A stretch of 64,000 bases of DNA from Syncephalis fuscata S228 (lineage: Eukaryota > Fungi > Zoopagomycota). The stretch lies in the NCBI GenBank assembly GCA_025786725.1, contig JAHLTZ010000005.1, positions 124,001 to 188,000 of the forward strand. The letters are read 5' to 3'. Position 1 is the stretch's first letter. Each line of letters begins with the position of its first letter. The notes beneath the pieces were generated by a model. It saw only the letters and a program-made list of their open reading frames with translations, was not told where the DNA came from and searched no databases. Of the stretch, positions 2,538-54,506 are shown piece after piece. A program made the translations under genes and the position numbers.

Positions 2538-5034
2538 CTAACTAGCCGCATTATCTAAATAACGTGCTAATTCCTATAGTAGATGAATAGTTAATTAATT
2601 AATTAATTATTATATAGTATTATTAATGCTACAACTATACTTGTACTTACCTCCTCTAAAATACCAACACTACTATTGGTTCGTTCAAATAATTGTTTAT
2701 AATTACGTAACGTGGCTTGAATAACTTGATCTCGATTACGATTGCCATCGCAAATTAGCTTTAAATCTTGTTCCATCTAATAGATATGATACAAATAATC
2801 GTTATTTACCAATAAACGCTATTAAATGACAATTACAATACCTGTCGACGTAGTAATGGTTTAGTTAAAGAGTGTTCGAGGTCAATACGGTCATAGCCGC
2901 GTACAAGTCCAATGCCTAATGTCGATGGATAAAAAAACCCATTTTGTTTAAATACATATTCTCTATCTATAACCTTCTTGATATGTTCGTGAATAGTCGC
3001 ATCAGTACCTAGTAATTAATAATAATAATAATTAATAAATAATATAGTGTCAATATACTCGGCTTACCAATACCATTGGCATCCATCATTGCAATAAGAT
3101 CAGCTTCACGTAGCAGAGCAGGTGCACTAGTTCTGCCTTCTGTCATCATTATTTCATTAGGCATAAATGTTTCGCCTTGCTCGAAATTTGGTATTAAACG
3201 CGTATTCCATTTCTCGTATGGATAAACATCGAGATAATTCTTTGCATCAACTATTAATCCTAAATAGCAATATTATATTAATATTAATATAACTAAAACT
3301 ACTAACTGTATTTACCTTTGGTCCAAAAGACTTCTCCAGTAATATCAACTTCTACTCGTGTTTCTCGTCCCCGTGCATCTTCCGAACAACAGGCTAGAAA
3401 TCGACGTGTAACAAATTCAAATACACTCTTTTCATGCTGTGTTAAATCAGCTGCATTTCCCGTTGGATGAATTGGTGGATGAGCTCGGTCATCGTCTTTT
3501 CCTTGACGGGGTGCTTTGAATCCACCATTGATTAAACTAAATAAGTTGTATTAACATTGTTTAATTCTATATATTGTATTAAACACCATGTTGTTACTTA
3601 CCGCTGAGCATAAGATCCCCATGATGGATCATTAACCTGTCGTTCAATCATGGTTGTAAATGGAAATGATGGATCAAATTTATTTGTTTCTGTACGTGGA
3701 TAACTAATAAGACCACGGATATATAGTGATTCAGCTGCCTAACACTATAGCATTTATAAAATGTCAAGTATAATATAACTTTACACTTACTGTCATCGCC
3801 TGACTTGATGACATATTTAGGAACCGTGAGGCATTTTTCTGTAATTCTACTGTGGTAAGTGGTAATGGCTTCCTATTTTCAGGTTTATATTATAATGATG
3901 GCAGTTTATACAATTGTATTTACCATTTAGAAGTTGCTCGTGATCGTACAGATAGCACGGTGGCAGTGGGCTCTTCCACACATGCTTCATACAATACCAT
4001 ACAAGAAAGTCGATCAAATAGATGGACACGGCGCCATAGAAAGCTAACCTGGGCATCTTCACGTTCCAGACGTACTTCAATCTTCCAAAACGTCTGTGGC
4101 ACAAAGTTTTCCACTTTTAAAAAACGATCTACTACAAATCCTAACGTAGGGAATTGACACCCACCTAGTCATCAATTAATAATATTAACAAATAGTTTAC
4201 TACTACTAGTTATTGACTACTGACCATAGCTAATAACGCGTTTACCAAGAAGTGGGAAGCGTCGTTGCAGTCTCATGGTTTGAAAGCGTGTAAATATGGC
4301 ACCAAGTCGTAGATCTATTTCACGGCGTGTATCCACTGCATTGACTAGTCGCATGTCTAATTCAGTAGGTGATTGGCAGGCTCGATTAATATCCCTATAA
4401 TCGCTCGATATTAATACAAATAACGTCCTTTGATAAAATAATGGTTATAAATACTGACCGAGCATTAACGACTGAGAATCGTGGTCGGCGTAGTATTAAT
4501 CGTGGGTTGGCCTGAAGACATGCTTGAGCAATCTCATAGGCAATGTTTTCGCCCTCTCGGTCACAATCGGTCCATAAATACAACTGTTGGGCACGTCGTG
4601 CTTTGTCAAGTAAATTCTTATGAACATCTTTCATATTCTATCATGGCTAGTATAAGTATATGTTATGTATCCTTTATTTCCATCTAATGGATATGACTGT
4701 TACTTACTTTTGAAATAGTACGCTGAATAGGTACTTCGAATAATATACTGGGTGGCCAGTTGGACCATTGGCGATACTCGGACGAGAAGTCATCTTCGGT
4801 AAGATGTCCAAGCACTGAAGTCATCACCATACTACAGACCTGAGTTCCTATACGATAGGTAAAATGAAAGTTTTTATTATACTTGGCACAGCTTTGTTCC
4901 TAATTGTAGACTTTAGTTACAGGTATGAATCTGCGCAACTGTAGCTATATTACCATTCTCATTTCACCTTGCGACAGAATCTGTGCAATTGACCTGGCCA
5001 TAGTTGGCTTTTCGGCCACATGAAGAATATGCAT
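2538..5034 (-). CDS. TOP3: DNA topoisomerase III (type IA), about 12 exons, short yeast-like C-terminus
   Basis: HVAEKP TOPRIM start, WTDCDREGENI, catalytic GLISYPRTET, AHPPIHPT, GIGTDAT; stop at 2538. Confidence 0.95.
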
Positions 5035-5051
5035 GACGGACAAAGATGAAA

Positions 5052-5084
5052 ACGCGTTTGTTACAGAAAAATAACAAGACGCGT
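5052..5084. promoter_or_regulatory. Two ACGCGT (MCB-like) boxes just upstream of TOP3
   Basis: ACGCGT at 5052-5057 and 5079-5084, within 50 nt of the TOP3 ATG. Confidence 0.4.
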
Positions 5085-5308
5085 CTGAATCAAATGTTAG
5101 TGCAACATTAAAGACACGTAAGTGTGGTAGCAAATCACCACTTTAACATTTCACAAATGGCTAAAATTTTTATTAATGAACAGTAATAATAAAATACTTT
5201 TATTCTTTCTAATTTATACATTTAAACAGCTATTGAATGATCATTAATAAATGGCTATTTAACACTATGAATTAAAGCATAAAATTATTCATATAGAAAT
5301 AATATGGT

Positions 5309-6944
5309 TTACTGTCTCAATATCAACGAAATCGTCACACCTATGGCTGCACCCCATTGAACACCTAATAGAAAAACAGCCATAAAAGTGGTCATCCAAA
5401 TATACCAGGCTATTCTATCACTGGACCAAAGTACTTGTACTTGATTCAATTGTCGTAGAAGACCACGGCAAGCCAGTAAGATAACTGCAGCCAGTACTGT
5501 TCGCGGCAGTGAATAGAATACTGGAGCCAGCCATAGTAGTGTTAGTATTACCATACCACCACTAAGAAGGCCGGTGACCTGTGTTTTGCCACCCGTGGAT
5601 GCCACAACAGCTGAACGAGTCAATGAGCCACAGCTTAAATAGCAGGAGAAGAAAGCACCACCTATACTTGATAGGCCAATGGCTACTAATTCCTGGCTTT
5701 CGTCAATGCTGTATATAAACTCATTAGCAAATGTTTTTGCAATAGACAAGGATATAACTGAGCCAATACAGGCAATCATAATGGCCGGCCACAATAATCC
5801 CCGTATGGCCAGTAAATTAGTAATGCCAATGGGTGATGCTAGAGGTGGTAGTCCAGTTGGTACAGATCCAACAACAGCAATATTATAGCGTGATTTCCAA
5901 TCCAGCATTGATGAAAGCATAATAGCGCCACTAATTGCTATTAACACATCAGGGATAGGTATACGTGTTAATGCTTGGCGCACTCGACGCAATTGTCCCG
6001 TCACTTCTCCAGAAAGCAGCCCAGTTACTTCAGTTGCTTGTCTACCAATGCTATTAGACACATTTGACTGTAATCGTTGCTTGCGATACTGTTCTAATCG
6101 ACCAAGTAACAACATAATAGCCAGTGTTGTGCATCCAATCACTGTAGTCGGTAGATGAATATTCCACCAATGAAAAATGACATATCGCCACGTATAAAGC
6201 AGTTCACCAATAACTCTGGGTTCCTTGGGGATACTGAGTCCAAATAGATTTGATAGCTGTGATGTACAGATGTGGAATGCTGAAGCGGTAGTAAATGCTG
6301 AGATAAATGCGTTAGGCATTAATGTATCAGAGAAACGGCCAATACGTAGCATGCCCATAATACACTGTGCCACGCCTACAAGAAACGATAGCGTTAAAGC
6401 GACGCTAACATACTCAGTGTTTTAAAAGCATCTAGGTCGACAAGCAATGCTACATCGTTTACTGCTTTGTGTGCACCATTTAGATATTGATTGACTGCTT
6501 GACCTAATAGTAAAGATGTTCTAAAGTGCCAAATTGAGTTATTATTGTAAATTGAATATTATCAACTTACAGGGCAAATGTACCAGTATTCATGTGTCGG
6601 CTCGTTCCTAAACATGCATAGATGCCCACTGGTATGGTCGATGCGTATAAACCGTAAACAGGTGGCAGTCCTAATACAATATATATATATATAAATATAT
6701 TATACCAATAGTTCAGTATTTAAACTAATAAATGTTTAATTGACTTACCGGCCAGCATGGCATAGGCCATACTTTGCGGAATAACAATGGTAGCTAGAGC
6801 TATTACAACAGTTAATACTATGTCTATTAGGTTCTACTAGTATTTACTTAGGCCGGCAATAACATCAGATACACCACATCGTTTCCAGTTATATGTAGGT
6901 AGCCATTTTAATATAGGTATGGCTCTATATAAACGTTGTGACAT
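5309..6944 (-). CDS. SLC26/SulP anion (sulfate) transporter, no STAS domain visible; one apparent frameshift near 6420
   Basis: IPILKWLPTYNW, DVIAG, IPQSMAYAMLAG, GLPPVYGLY, QELVAIG, GSLTRSAV, GGKTQVTGL motifs. Confidence 0.9.
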
Positions 6945-45592: not shown

Positions 45593-47584
45593 ATGTCTTT
45601 AAGCACTAGCAATGAGCGTTTGTGGAAGAGCTTGGATGTTTTATTGTATCTGTGCAATTTCATGGATGACAAAACGTTGACACTTTTCGCCATGAGTTGC
45701 CAGTTTATATACCAAATAGTGACTGGTCGGTCATATATTTGGAAACAGCGATATTTCCAAACATTTTGTCTGAGCGATAGACGCGAACAAGAATGGCTTT
45801 CATGGTTTATCTGGTGTACAGACACTATAGCAAAATCAAGAATGGCTACACTTAGAATAAATAAGAAGCGAAAGCGTTTGCTATTGTCTGCCGTTACAAC
45901 CGTTACTAACAGCGATAGCGAACCTACATCGCTTGCTAGTGATTCTTCATTGATCCTGGTTTCGCTACCATTCAATGGTGCCATGCCTATCAACGTCGCC
46001 AACAGGCCAGTTACAATTTGATGGTAGGCCAATTTAACAGGCGGCAATGCCAACTGCCATTTAAAGAAGGCATGGAGCTGAAAATAATCAACATAAATCC
46101 ATGGAATGCACTAGTATGTGATAAAACATTTAAACGAATATGGCCAATTCATCATGATGTTTTCGATGAAGGAAATGAACACAGCGGCAAGAAAATAATT
46201 GGAAAAGAATGATTAGTATTTTATCGGCGCCTGATATTATACGTCATATACACTTTATTTGTGGAACAAACCGATTTGTTGTGGCAGGTGTTATGATGAA
46301 TGCATATGAAGATTTAAAAGCAACTTACGTCGGCGACCCAGTAGGTAAGTACTAATGATTAATAATAATAATAATAAGTATTTATTAATAATATTAACAA
46401 TAGTAAAATGGTCTAAAGCGAAAGCACGGCGTACCAAAAAGAATAAAGATGAAGCTTCTACTGATTCAGCGATCATTGAATCTTCAGAGAAGCAAGAATT
46501 TGATGCACGAGATGCCATTTTAGTATGGCCTATCGACAACAACTCACCTCCTAACATTATCTATTTTGATGGCGGCCCTGGAGAAGAATGGGTGGGTTTA
46601 TGCCAAAACTAGTTGATGCTTATAACGATTGGATGCTTTTTCGTATATCTAATATAAATTTACTGCGCTTTGAATTTCATTTATACAGTTGCAACGAAAG
46701 TCAATGGATAGAAGTTTCACTTGATGCTTTTGCATCCAGTTCTATTCAGGTTGCTTGCCGTGACCAATGCCAGGTGCTAAATTGGAAAATAACACGTAAA
46801 TTCCTCAAAACTAGCGATACTTCTACGTCCACTGCTGCACAAAATGTGGAAATTATTAGCAATGACTATCCAGCAATACGCGTTGCATGGAAACTGTCTG
46901 ATTTTCAAACAGGTCAGTCTCAATGTAAAAAGATATTGTCAGGCCAAATTGATTTTCCATATTACCCAAATGCCATCATCAAATCCGAGATATATACATC
47001 TAGAATGTGTTTAGTCATTCTACATGACGCAACTAAAGGCGAAGAAGAAATCTGTAATGGAACGTTTAAAGCATTGCTCTCTTTATTTGCACTAGGAAAG
47101 CTATCATCGAATAATTCACCAGAGTTTTTATTTGATGCCAAAGACTATGAGCAACTATTGCCAATCGATAGTTCAGAACAAGGACGTATATTATGGACTC
47201 GAACTATTGGCAACAATACCGTTACAAAGCTATACAGCGAGAAGCTGATCATTGTTCAAAATGTTAAGAAATATGATATACTGGATGCTCGAAATGGAGA
47301 TTTATTGCGTTCAATCGTTTGTTCACATCATTCAAATCTTGTTCCTTTGCTTGGATCTTTATGTGCAATGTTTAATGGGGAATTCAAAAAAAATTACCTT
47401 GTTGACATGCACACTGGTCTTATTTGTAAACCGTCAGCACGTCTTATTAGCAGACAAATGGAAGATATCTCAGCCATTTTCAAATCGCGATAGATACTTA
47501 AAGCATTTTAAATACTATGCATCAAATGCTATTGTTGGTCGAATTAACATGAATAATGGAGCATACGAAGCATTTATACTGTGA
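45593..47584 (+). CDS. Lineage-specific F-box protein, paralog 2 (5 or more frame disruptions; possibly a pseudogene)
   Basis: LWKSLDVLLYLCNFMDDKTL..; shares LLSLFALGK..LFDAxDY..LLPIDSSxQGRILW and an intron position with 12291-14358. Confidence 0.75.
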
Positions 47585-48591: not shown

Positions 48592-48714
48592 TTTATGAAA
48601 ACAGATTGTTTAATAATATTAAATGTCACACACATGTTATGCGATTGATGCATTTTATTTTGTTGACATAAAAAAGCCTAAAGTTTTAAAAAGTTAAAAT
48701 TAAAATATTTGGAT

Positions 48715-48910
48715 CTACTTTGTAGCCAATTAGCCATCATACAGCCAATTAAATTACGTCTATGCAATCAGCAGATACTGCAATGCCGTGTGGTTACTTG
48801 AAAGTAAAAATGTAAAATAAAATGAAGAAAAAAGCATTAATAAAAAATCAGCAACGTCATTAAAAATGATCATTATAATTACCTTATTATTTAAAGTCGA
48901 TAAACTTTAA
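48715..48910 (-). ncRNA. Candidate omega-RNA of Fanzor relic A
   Basis: Hairpins at 48891-48910, 48763-48782 and 48727-48751 directly 3' of the ORF; the G-U pairs work only on the minus strand. Confidence 0.45.
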
Positions 48911-48919
48911 GGAATGTTA

Positions 48920-49720
48920 GCTTCTTCAAAACCAATCTGGTAAATACCGCTTAATCGTAGACTATCAAGAATACGCTTGAAATTCAAAATAGCAGCCAAA
49001 TTACAATGCCGCAATCTTACACCAGTAAAAGTTTCATGTTTTTTTACAAGTTTGATTTGTGCACCTACAAACAAGCTAAATGTTAGAATAAAATATTTAT
49101 TTGTATTCAGTCTATAAATTATAGTACCTTATAACTCTATGACACTTTACTTTTGGATGATTACGACGCTGATACGGACGTGGATTATCGATTATTTGGA
49201 ATGTTTTAAACTTTGAGCTTGACAAGTGGGACAGGTTTAGAGCTGTTATACTCATCAACTAAAAGCACGTTAAAATCATTCTTTTAAAGCATACGCTTCA
49301 AAGTCAGCACCTCAAATAGGTTTTTGAAACTTTACATGACTTGCAGACCAGTTACCAAATATTAAAGTAGCATTACTATCAAACTTGAATCTAAGCTTAT
49401 TGATAAGCTTTGGTCAGCTTGCTGTCGTCTAATGTACAAACATAGCTTTAGTTTTCTGAACAGCCATTTTTGTTTGATAGGATGTATATTTGTTTGATAA
49501 GCGTAATATGATGCAAGGTATTGGCAGACAACAGCACGAACGGTGAATATTCCTCAAAGTTAGATATATTAGCAGATCTGGTTTGACATTGAGACAATAA
49601 TTTTTCTTTTCTTTGAGCATCGGGGCACCTTGCTTTCAATCCCAATCTGATTCTGCAATACTTCTTGTCCCGGTATCAAAATATTTTTGATTTAAAGTAT
49701 ATCTGTAGGTCATTGGCTCT
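48920..49720 (-). pseudogene. Fanzor1 (TnpB-like RuvC nuclease) relic A, C-terminal half, with intron 49065-49127
   Basis: YRYTLNQK, LFRKLKL..YIRRQQAD, LRFKFDSNATLIFGNWSA, VLLVDEYNSS, CPTC, NPRPY..CH..|RCTNQTC, LAAILNFKRILDSLR. Confidence 0.88.
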
Positions 49721-49904
49721 TGAATTATGCTGAAGTTATAGTGTGTGTATATGCAAAATAACTTTATAAAAACACAACTATTTAACCATTGGATTACATT
49801 AATAATTAGCAAGTTGTAAAATAATTCATTAGCTAATTTATTTGTAAAGCAATAATCCAACAAAATAACGGAATAGTGCTAAATATAATTTTTATTTGAA
49901 CTGT

Positions 49905-51738
49905 TTAACCTCTAACTGTTCCATAGTATGGAATAAAAACAGCACGGCCTGATGGTGGTTTATTGAATCTTGGATTAGGATCAAGTACAATATATCCGGA
50001 ATATGACCATGTTTTATCCTTTGCTATATTCTCCGGTGTACTAATTGTTACATCAAATTCGGATATTTGATTTGGATATAAATTAATAGATCCTGGAAGG
50101 GAGACGACAGCAAGTATAGATGGATTTAACGATATATTGTTAGTATGTGGTGTTCTTAAAATCGAGACATTCGGAATATGTGAGATTTTATACGATAATG
50201 ATGTGGTAGCTACAGGCGAAGCTCTGATGGTTGTTTTCAATAATCTGACGTTATCTCTCATATCAATTAAAGATGGAAAAACATGAATTCTTTCAGGATT
50301 CATTAGTCTGTTGAAATTAATCATGCCGGCACCTTGATGTGATGTAGGAGCATAGACATCTGTATTGCTGACTTTGACCGGAACTGCGCTGTTTTGCAAT
50401 ATAGTTTTAACGTATTCAACGTTGATCAAACGCTTGTCATAAACATTAGCTATCAATGCAGCTGCACCGGCAACATATGCAACAGCAGCTGATATATCAG
50501 TAAAATGAAATTGATTCATTTTTTCATGAACCATGCCAGTGAAAAGTCTGTGGCTTGGTGCCAAGATGTCAGGATAGAAAGGCGGCATGAATGGTTGGTT
50601 GTGCCGTGCAGTTGTGTCGACAGTAGCGCTGCCATCCTCAATGTAGCCATACTTTTCTGCAAAAATATATTTGTATCCACGGTTATCTTTATAGCCTTCT
50701 TCTATAAACAAAGCATCATCTGTACTAATATCGAATAAGGGTATTTCGCAGTTTTGTCTTTCTTTATAAGGACCGTTTACAATGATAAGCCCAGCCATTT
50801 TTGCTGCTTTAGCACGTTCTAACACAGTCGGCATTTCTGCTTTTTTATACCAAATAAGCGCAATGTCTCCTTGATGAAATCATTTAAATGTCTATTTAAG
50901 GTGCTTATATAATTGTTAGGAAAATATTCATTTCTTTACCAAAGTCATATTTCATGTTTAAACATGAGGATGCAAATTCAATACGACGCTGGGTTGTTTT
51001 TTCTTCAAACCAATGCGATAAATGATAATCTTGTCTGGCACCACCGACGCTTAATACAGGAAGATTTTGGTATGAAAAGTACTGTCGATTTCAAAATTTT
51101 TAGTCGTGGCTGCAACAATCATAATCACGCCTTGTCTTGCAACATCTTCTATTGTTGTTCTCAGTTCAGTGCCGGCTTCATCTACAACGGAATTTCCGGC
51201 AATACAATAATTTGCATTTGATCATTGACTGCAGTTCTTATAGCTTGCAACACCAATGAGGTTGAAGTTGGACCTTCGCAGCCAAATACGCGATAAGTAC
51301 CAAGTGTCGCCTCAGGAGCAACTCCAGCGAAGTAACCAGTTTTAGCAACGGCAATTCCAGCCATGTGTGTGCCGCGATTATTGCATTGAAGTTTATCTCT
51401 AATTTTATTGCTATTAATATCACAAATTTGCGATTATAGACGTAATTTCCTTCAAATGCATTAATTCCAAAATTAATGCCACTATCAATAATTCCGAGTT
51501 TTACGCCTTTTCCTTTGATACTCATAGCGTGAAGTGTTTCAACACCAGTGGAAACATAGTAAGGCGTCATATAGACTGGTCTACCAGTGATATAGGAATT
51601 GATATAAGGACCGATGGAACTAGTACTTGCGTAAAAATCATTTCCATATGTTGTAATACTGTCTACGCCAAAATACTGTGTTGAACAAAATAGCAATAGT
51701 GTAAAAATTGTCAATTGCTGTAATTGTTTTGATATCAT
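49905..51738 (-). CDS. Secreted subtilisin-like S8 protein with PA domain; catalytic His replaced; frameshifted
   Basis: Signal peptide, KGKGVKLGIIDSG, CNNRGTHMAGI, GVAPEATLGTYRVFGC, PDILAP, DISAAVAYVAGAAAL, HQGAGMIN. Confidence 0.88.
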
Positions 51739-52195: not shown

Positions 52196-52485
52196 AATTA
52201 TTATTGTTGTTGACTATGCGTAGAAAATTGATAGAACATTAATAAAAGCCATATGGTTGTGATTCTATGTCATTCCGCAGTTGTTATTGTTGTTACTGCG
52301 TACAGTGTAATTTATTTGCGTCTAAATGGTCTTTTTTATTTTCCAATCCTCTACTGTTGCATTTTGGACATATCTGTGATGTAAAATCACGATTAATATA
52401 ATTATTATAAATATTGTTTATTAAACAACTAGTTGATAATAAAGTTCCACTTATTGCTTTTAAAGCTGCTTGATTTGCCACTTCT
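52196..52485 (-). pseudogene. Fanzor relic B (RuvC-II/zinc finger/RuvC-III remnant)
   Basis: INRDFTSQICPKCNSRGL followed by a degenerate H..NNNNC segment; the 26.9 kb copy keeps WNRD. Confidence 0.8.
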
Positions 52486-52800
52486 ATGAAAAACAAGATT
52501 GCTGGACTGGTCAATTGTTGCAGAAAGGTGCTCAAAACTGCTGGGCGACAACGACTTTTGGTGATTGTAGATATTGATGAATACAATACATTAAAAGTCT
52601 GTTCCAAATATAAGAAAAAAAAGATGGCAGATTTGTTTCTAAAAAAACACAACAGCACAATGCATAGCGTACTTGTTTGTCAAAACAATGGTTGTCGTAC
52701 GGTATGGCAACGTGGCATTAATGCCAGCAGAAACATGCACAGGATATTCAGTACAATGGCCAGTGGTGAACCAAAGCCTTTTAATTTCTTACCGTTTATT
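52486..52800 (+). pseudogene. Fanzor relic C (C-terminal RuvC/zinc finger)
   Basis: AGLVNCCRKVLKTAGRQRLLVIVDIDEYNTLKVCSKY..MHSVLVCQNNGCRTVWQRGINASRNM (RuvC-III Asp changed to Gly). Confidence 0.88.
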
Positions 52801-54506
52801 ATTATAATAAATCAAACTAACGCTGCTGCATCAACGTCATAATCAAATGTAACATTTTATTGTATGTAACATGAAATACTATTTAACGTTTATTAACACA
52901 TATCGGACATTGAAAATAGTACAGATTAATTGCCACTGGTTAATTTAATCAGAGTCAATGTAGCACTACAACAGCTAACACTTCTCAGTGTTAAAAACTG
53001 ATTGACGATTTATCATTCAAATTATAAATCTTTTGTCCCAGTTTGAAACTAGGAAGTCAAAGTGCAGTAGCTTCGTAGCTTTAATAACATACCACATTTT
53101 TATAAAAAATTTTGCTGATACTGGTTGGTTGTAAATTATACAACAATGTATATATAAGCTGTTACATGCTATTTATGTTTTCCAAATAGCAATACATATA
53201 ATAAAACTGCACACAATATTAAATTATCTGCTTGCTGTGTAAATAGATCAAACTTATTTATTACATTGGGTCTAACGTTTTTATATTAACAAAAAAAATG
53301 AAATTTGTAAAATTTGTTGATATGATTGTGCTGTTATTTATAAAATAGATTAATTATCTTAAATACGGAATATTTGTTATAATGGCTAATGTCACTCACC
53401 ATCTAGTTACATGTCAATAGATTGAATGCGTATTTCAATTGCGCAAATGTTATTAAAAATAATCATTTAATCCCCAAATCACATCAAATAGTTAAAACTG
53501 TTTAATTTATATATATATAATTGGAAAGAAAAAACTACTAATTTTTAAAACTGTACACAGATAAAGGCGCACAAATAAGCACCCAATGAATATAGCGTAA
53601 TATAAAACTTGGTATTTATTAATGCAAAAAGGGCTGTCTTCAATAGATATGAAACATAAAGGGAGCACACGTTCAGTGTTGTTGATATGGATGGCCATTC
53701 TATGCTACATTCATACCACTAAAAAATACATATTATATACTTTTATCAACTCTTTATAATTTAAAACTAACAATGAATTAAAACTGATTGGCATAGTAAA
53801 AGAGAACTACTATAATCCATCCGCTAATGTTGATAATGCTAAATAATACGACGAAATAAAACATAAACCAATGAGCGAGAAATGGATAATTGTCGTATGA
53901 TAACACTACTACTATAACTAGGGTATGTGTAATAATGCATGGAAGGAAGATAGGCCGTTTCAGAAACTAGTTCAAGCCACAGCGATAAGTATTAAAAGCA
54001 AATAGTAAAGAAAATAGATAAAGATAAGCCGCCATTTTCACGTGTTATTTACACGCATGGAATAATAAAGAGAAAAAATGAAATAATGGGCGCGCAAAGA
54101 GCAATAGTGAACCAACTATACGTATCATGGATAGTTAGTTAGCTAGTTGTCATCGGTTGTTGTTGTTGTTATTTTCACTATAACTATAATATGGTTGTTG
54201 TTATTACCACAAATAAATTTAATGATATAACTGGAAAGGGCACAAATATCATTGATTTAATTTATGTTAAATAATAATAGCAACCATAGTAATAGTTGCA
54301 CAGCATGATAGTGTTAAACATAGGACATGTGTATCACAACACCATCATCATCACCATCACCACCACCATCAAATCAAGACAATAAATGAATGCTGAAAAA
54401 GAGGCAGTTTAATACATGTCAGAAAATAAAGAAAACTCCATAGCCACCCACGAGAGGTAAGATATGTCGTTACATCGCTTACCAATCAAAGGGAGGGTAA
54501 GAATAT

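Follow-up and report, generated by a model that had tools for sequence, protein, structure and literature searches.

In a 64,000-nucleotide stretch of the Syncephalis fuscata S228 genome (hereafter the window), the minus-strand segment 49752-48910 is very probably a non-functional, 5'-truncated Fanzor1 pseudogene. It belongs to the fungal clade that contains the Fanzor1 of Parasitella parasitica (PpFz1). Our high confidence covers the reading as a whole, including the decay of the gene, its duplication together with a subtilase gene and its partial homogenisation with sister copies. The relic is a dead representative of a nuclease family that is already characterised; it is no new enzyme and now performs no function. 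We found no paper that mentions Fanzor together with Syncephalis. We suggest the following history. The ancestor would have been a transposon-borne gene for an omega-RNA-guided RuvC nuclease some 650-770 aa long, and it would already have had an intron of about 60 nt, in phase 2, within the zinc finger, where it separated CHGLLR from C....C. The present copy retains just the final 40% of that gene. With the RuvC-I and RuvC-III aspartates gone and at least seven frameshifts plus stops acquired, it is incapable of producing a nuclease. The relic was duplicated along with the subtilase gene directly upstream, and later it and its sister copies became more uniform in part, most likely through gene conversion. 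The features are collected in Table 1.

Table 1. Features of the relic and its flanks in the window (coordinates count from the first letter of the window).
Feature	Coordinates	Strand	Remarks
5'-truncated, frameshifted Fanzor1 pseudogene	48910..49752	-	family profile positions 389-646 of 657, from just past RuvC-I to the C-terminus
Subtilase-type gene	49905..51738	-	stop codon 49905-49907; weak Peptidase_S8 and Fn3-like matches
Spacer between subtilase stop and relic	49753..49904	-	common to eight units of the window type
NVLLVDEYNSSK (includes VDEY, RuvC-II)	49283-49236	-	three-frame translation
RuvC-II glutamate codon (E of VDEY)	49251..49253	-	KNDFNVLLVDEYNSSK aligned with kkgfevylidEfrTsk; sole catalytic residue retained
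Zinc finger, first half (TCPTC), TCPTCQAQSLKHSK	49195..49236	-	entered only via a 1-nt frameshift
FKTFQIIDNPRPYQRRNHPKVKCHRVIR / KVKCHRVIR	ends 49129	-	directly before the intron
Phase-2 spliceosomal intron, 63 nt	49066..49128	-	GT 49128-49127, CTAAC 49087-49083, AG 49067-49066; between CH(R)VIR and CTNQTC
Zinc finger, second half (CTNQTCKK)	49041..49064	-	followed by a frame-shifting 2-nt deletion
HETFTGVRLRHCNLAAILNFKRILDSLRLSGI	downstream of the 2-nt deletion, to the stop at ~48910	-	three-frame translation
RLRHCNLAAILNFKRIL	~49015-48960	-	occupies the place of family RLWNRDLAAxLNF
Degenerate RuvC-III, RHCN	48997..49008	-	family WNRD; majority of local copies WHCD; catalytic Asp to Asn
Non-coding 3' tail, ~150 nt	48760..48909	-	common to most copies

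The assignment to Fanzor1 comes from a profile that links the relic to solved structures. A sister copy (C190, locus L031) retains an open frame of 175 codons, which is identical to KAI9593358.1. An exhaustive phmmer search with this frame retrieved 357 proteins (76 at E <= 1e-10), many of them 550-800 aa long. We built a profile of 657 positions (A1) from 22 full-length relatives. It matches PpFz1 (PDB 9CF0) end to end with E 5.3e-233, Spizellomyces punctatus Fanzor1 (SpuFz1, PDB 8GKH) with E 3.5e-110 and Guillardia theta Fanzor1 (GtFz1, PDB 9CER) with E 1.6e-28. When all 3,293 six-frame stop-to-stop pieces of the window were compared with A1, eight colinear minus-strand matches appeared at 49752-48925, covering profile positions 389-646 (E 3.1e-11, 1.6e-9, 2.6e-6, 3.2e-5, 0.005, 0.021 and 0.023, and one weak match). 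The only other significant locus in the window lies at 52474-52839, and the remaining matches have E of 0.14 or above. Through this profile link the relic has significant homology to characterised Fanzor1 proteins. The call of a Fanzor1 relic, made in an earlier note from the letters of this DNA, is thus borne out, since A1 matches the PpFz1 and SpuFz1 structures and the window pieces match A1. A chance resemblance in AT-rich DNA could be argued from the shortness of the motifs, their different frames and the silence of Pfam on the single pieces. However, a whole-window search gave eight colinear profile matches, down to E 3e-11, and the genome holds no fewer than 27 homologous copies, some reaching profile position 5, which leaves chance with a negligible probability. 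The likeness of the relic to Fanzor1 is far above chance level.

The choice of profile matters for such a search. The earlier note had proposed a check with Fanzor/TnpB HMMs, and the outcome is positive with the Fanzor1-specific profile (best E 3.1e-11) and negative with Pfam PF07282 on single pieces. Neither the single open pieces of the relic matched PF07282 nor did the sister ORFs give anything with Pfam. The gathering cut-off of PF07282 is 26.3 bits, while the full-length relatives of the relic score only 15-22 bits and the sister copy C314 reaches 24 bits (E 0.0013), still under the cut-off. The Pfam TnpB model misses the clade of the relic, so that a profile specific to Fanzor1 is needed for scans.

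PpFz1 is an active nuclease that cleaves DNA with a 5'-ATN TAM (Xu et al., Cell 2024, PMC11423790). PpFz1 (PDB 9CF0-9CF3) and the relatives of the relic belong to the same Fanzor1 clade, with the profile aligned from end to end. The signature blocks in common are GNWSAP..., LIDEfrTS..CP.C, NPRP......CHGLLRC....C and LWNRD.AAvLNFr.IL. Unlike PpFz1, the relic has only the C-terminal 40% or so, with frameshifts and only one of the three catalytic acidic residues left. PpFz1 has a large insertion that falls outside all positions of the family profile; nothing in the relic corresponds to it. SpuFz1 (8GKH) and bacterial TnpB (PF07282) have the core of RuvC and zinc ribbon in common with the relic, but their relationship to it is more distant. 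TnpB genes are not known to have introns.

The motifs that had been read from the letters are all in place. Three-frame translation of the minus strand at 48700-49900 recovers every one of them, spread over several frames, so that no single reading of the sequence gives them all. This holds for the RuvC-II motif VDEY, for the zinc finger CPTC..CTNQTC, whose halves lie in different frames, and for the degenerate RuvC-III, where RHCN stands at the WNRD position. RuvC-I is unrecognisable; the relic reads CVFIKLFC at the site where relatives read CVLIDPGRRDLLFC. Of the Asp/Glu/Asp triad of RuvC, the relic therefore keeps the RuvC-II glutamate, with RuvC-I absent and RuvC-III reduced to RHCN. The zinc-finger cysteines (CxxC ... 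C....C) are preserved as CPTC, the C of KVKCH and CTNQTC, though in different frames and split by the intron.

The relic is decayed throughout. There is no match to A1 positions 1-388 at this locus, so the N-terminal 60% of the protein, including the RuvC-I aspartate, is missing. Lesions were counted against a majority consensus of the relic copies. Seven frameshifting indels are private to the window copy when it is set against the majority of about 16 non-redundant copies. At several of its codons a stop stands in place of the CGA, CAA or CAG found in some sister copies. Even after splicing, an open frame that includes the N-terminal WED/REC domains is not found, given the seven indels, the stops and the missing positions 1-388. 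Near 49314-49312, 49286-49284 and 49171-49169, most copies have TGA or TAA and a minority have CGA, CAA or CAG. These minority sense codons at common stop sites suggest that the ancestor was open and that decay proceeded largely by C-to-T transitions. RIP-like mutation was considered as a source of the decay; the mutations are biased towards transitions and the excess of GC-to-AT changes is only moderate, which is not diagnostic.

Could the locus instead be a functional multi-intron gene that is merely fragmented by the six-frame listing of ORFs? Fanzor genes can be intron-rich (PMC10530073), and one intron here is real. However, neighbouring homologous pieces overlap in their coordinates and leave no inserted sequence for splicing out, so the frame changes are frameshifts and not further introns. 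Stops such as the TAA at 49286-49284 are CAA in sister copies. In addition, 388 N-terminal profile positions with the RuvC-I aspartate are absent, and the RuvC-III aspartate has become asparagine. We give a functional gene practically no weight and retain the pseudogene.

The one intron of the relic is genuine, and we consider it inherited rather than locally gained. The segment GT...CTAAC...AG (62-64 nt), with GT and AG intact, is found in nearly all of about 20 aligned relic copies. Its removal joins ...KVKCH(G)LL AG|G TGC ACA... in phase 2 to give CHGLLR-CTNQNC, and this junction matches the family consensus and PpFz1, both of which have CHGLLRC....C without a break. The copies, the gene of Syncephalis plumigaleata described below and the database models have the intron in common, which indicates that it is old in the clade. 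Splicing of the intron in vivo is predicted. The exons of the spliced model were each examined on their own. The earlier note had described a 63-nt GT-AG intron with a ctaac branch point that splits the zinc finger. The intron is real and restores the frame, but its limits are 49128-49066, one base off the 49065-49127 that had been given. The note had also taken the intron as a sign of adaptation to eukaryotic expression. This is not new, as Fanzor genes are already known to acquire introns (PMC10530073).

The conserved intron leaves its mark on the database. Among the retrieved proteins, 10 stop at CHGLLR or a few residues from it (two of them run 2-4 intron-derived residues further), 3 longer models continue into AT-rich intron nonsense, and 23 go on as CHGLLRC...WNRD. 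Thus, the intron explains why several database Fanzor1 models end at CHGLLR and hence have no RuvC-III.

One of these models belongs to the closest apparently intact relative of the relic, in S. plumigaleata. The gene (KAI8056096.1, P0013) lies at L043:3001-5361 (GCA_025201365.1, JAIXMF010000003.1). Exon 1 is an open frame of 631 codons that ends ...ICHGLL AG. It is followed by a 60-nt GT-AG intron (L043 4893-4952), with the same site and phase as in the relic. Exon 2 is an open frame of 136 codons, starts A TGC ACA (CTHQTC...) and contains RLWNRDMAACLNF. The motifs DPGRR, IDEH and WNRD of RuvC-I, II and III are all present. The deposited model (631 aa) stops inside the intron because AG|GTAA is read as a TAA stop. 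The gene and the relic are alike in the position and phase of the intron after CHGLLR and in the order of the motifs, but exon 2 in S. plumigaleata has an acidic, Asp/Glu-rich insertion that is absent from the relic. Judged from its reading frames and motifs, the two-exon gene looks like an intact Fanzor1. The corrected gene is the realistic candidate for an active Fanzor1 in Zoopagomycota, and we regard it as the most useful by-product of this analysis.

The S. fuscata genome itself is rich in relics of the same family. The 861-bp relic stretch has at least 27 relatives, 80-88% identical, in the 29.4-Mb assembly, and many of these copies sit just 3' of subtilase paralogues. Some are longer (C24, C316, C201, C68 and C223) and reach profile positions 5 to 65, with the N-terminal part present and decayed. 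Copies of the C190 type extend further upstream than the relic and carry a degenerate RuvC-I (LLDTERKDL). The earlier note had raised the prospect of an intact relative elsewhere in the genome that could be a new RNA-guided nuclease. This expectation failed: among the best 67 of 129 candidates from the A1 genome search that were scored, no intact member of the family was found, and the long matches contain multiple stops (best 243 bits). C24 and C316 were examined as large open frames and proved to be fragmented near-full-length relics. The tblastn search for intact copies that had been suggested fared no better. The C190 frame was compared with the ten best PF07282 loci and was related to the relic family only at C316. 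At these ten loci, where an intact relative was also sought, each had only a C-terminal frame open over some 50-131 aa, with no Fanzor homology upstream of it. Since no intact sister copy was found in these searches, the relic cannot be revived from one in its genome, and there is little to gain from the relic locus itself.

Other Fanzor clades are represented in the genome as well. It has 87 PF07282 sites, about 26 of them above the cut-off, which come from these other clades. Nine loci (L022, L024, L026, L028, L030 and L037-L040) have a C-terminal frame only, at profile positions 551-650. Over the genome, Fanzor 3' ends far outnumber 5' parts.

The subtilase-type gene lies on the same strand as the relic, which begins about 150 nt past the subtilase stop codon. 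We read the genomic context at loci L002-L020, L031-L036 and L041-L042. Eight units have one and the same junction of relic, spacer and subtilase, which indicates that the relic and the subtilase gene were duplicated together. The subtilase family (window 49905-51738; L002-L009, L032 and L033) is dispersed and fast-evolving, with 52-57% amino-acid identity. Several of the paralogues are broken by stops or frameshifts. Beyond the 3' end of the relic there is an ORF of 301 aa at 46588-47493 on the plus strand, with no Pfam match. It has a 48%-identical paralogue at L033:5961-6497 on the minus strand, in the matching relative position beside the C112 unit, which suggests that the duplicated block reaches past the relic.

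In some units the relic occurs twice. In C112 and C109/C13, a second partial copy (profile positions 465-649) lies inverted on the far side of the subtilase gene. The resulting inverted arms are about 650 nt long: L033:618-1265 and 4994-5638 (C112), C109 743-1372 and 3980-4844, and C13 331966-332830 and 335436-336065. The arms are 98-100% identical within a unit and 82-92% identical between units. Their outer ends are asymmetrical, with the A arm lacking the last 110 nt or so. Their inner break (near window position 49524-49528) is common to several units, which points to an old arrangement that has been kept uniform, probably by gene conversion. A transposon with long terminal inverted repeats and the subtilase as cargo was considered and rejected, as the full-length C68, C201 and C223 have no inverted partner and the outer ends of the arms are unequal in C112 and C109. 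We saw no transposase at the loci that we read, nor was a target duplication established. Other units have the inverted relic copy upstream of the subtilase gene; in the window this place is taken by a remnant of a different Fanzor clade. It is an open frame of 122 aa at 52474-52839 on the plus strand (IDEYNTLKVC...WQRGINASRNM; PF07282 E 2e-4; A1 positions 543-646), and at the DNA level it does not resemble the relic.

Relic sequences from different units resemble each other more closely than their surroundings do. Relic identity between units is 85-90%, against 57-79% for the C-terminal exon of the subtilase gene. In window coordinates, 48800-50000 (the relic and the last 100 nt or so of the subtilase CDS) is 83-93% identical and 50000-50900 is 57-79% identical. 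For the two units with intact C-terminal exons, the relic has a Jukes-Cantor distance of 0.13-0.16, while dS of the subtilase is 0.37-0.43 (dN/dS 0.44-0.83). Divergence below that of the adjoining synonymous sites is unexpected for neutral junk of equal age. The near-identical inverted arms indicate that gene conversion acts on the relics, which makes conversion between loci the most economical explanation. We consider inter-locus gene conversion the likely, though not proven, source of the excess similarity. Together with the inverted arms around subtilase genes, this similarity of the relics makes a compact and manageable example of concerted evolution, in which dead transposon DNA lies beside the fast-evolving protease family of a mycoparasite.

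A different account of this similarity has to be weighed. The block could be a non-autonomous, 5'-deleted derivative, that is, a guide-RNA or right-end module that was spread later by homing-type repair or trans mobilisation; or it could be 3' UTR or regulatory DNA of the subtilase gene. The contrast between relic and adjacent coding exon, in identity (85-90% against 57-79%) and in distance (0.13-0.16 against 0.37-0.43), is in line with this account, as is the extension of the high identity into the last 100 nt or so of the subtilase CDS before it drops. The nine other Fanzor loci that were checked have only the C-terminal 100 aa or so, and the copies have a 3' tail in common up to about 48760. 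The guide RNA of a Fanzor (omega or fRNA) is encoded 3' of the gene, so the tail is where it would be expected, as is the right end of the element. However, RNAalifold on the aligned copies gave no conserved fold in the tail (-3.6 kcal/mol, with negligible covariation), and none of the genome candidates that were scored is an intact Fanzor1 of the same family able to act in trans. The single junction in eight units means that relic and subtilase were co-duplicated. The arms within a unit are 98-100% identical, and gene conversion alone can yield the excess similarity. The outer ends of the inverted arms are also asymmetrical, with the A arm short by about 110 nt. On balance we judge later spread or a regulatory role improbable, and prefer a co-duplicated pseudogene with gene conversion between loci.

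It is equally doubtful that the truncated block and its tail form a selfish or co-opted module that moves or converts among subtilase 3' flanks. If true, this would explain how dead DNA came to be about three times less diverged than neighbouring synonymous sites. The module would then be a remnant of homing, directed by a guide RNA, into paralogous sites, or its inverted arms would shuffle a cassette with a secreted protease. Two pairs of relics on different contigs, C109 with C13 and C66 with C317:375384-376234, are about 100% identical. They represent haplotigs left uncollapsed or segmental duplications of very recent date.
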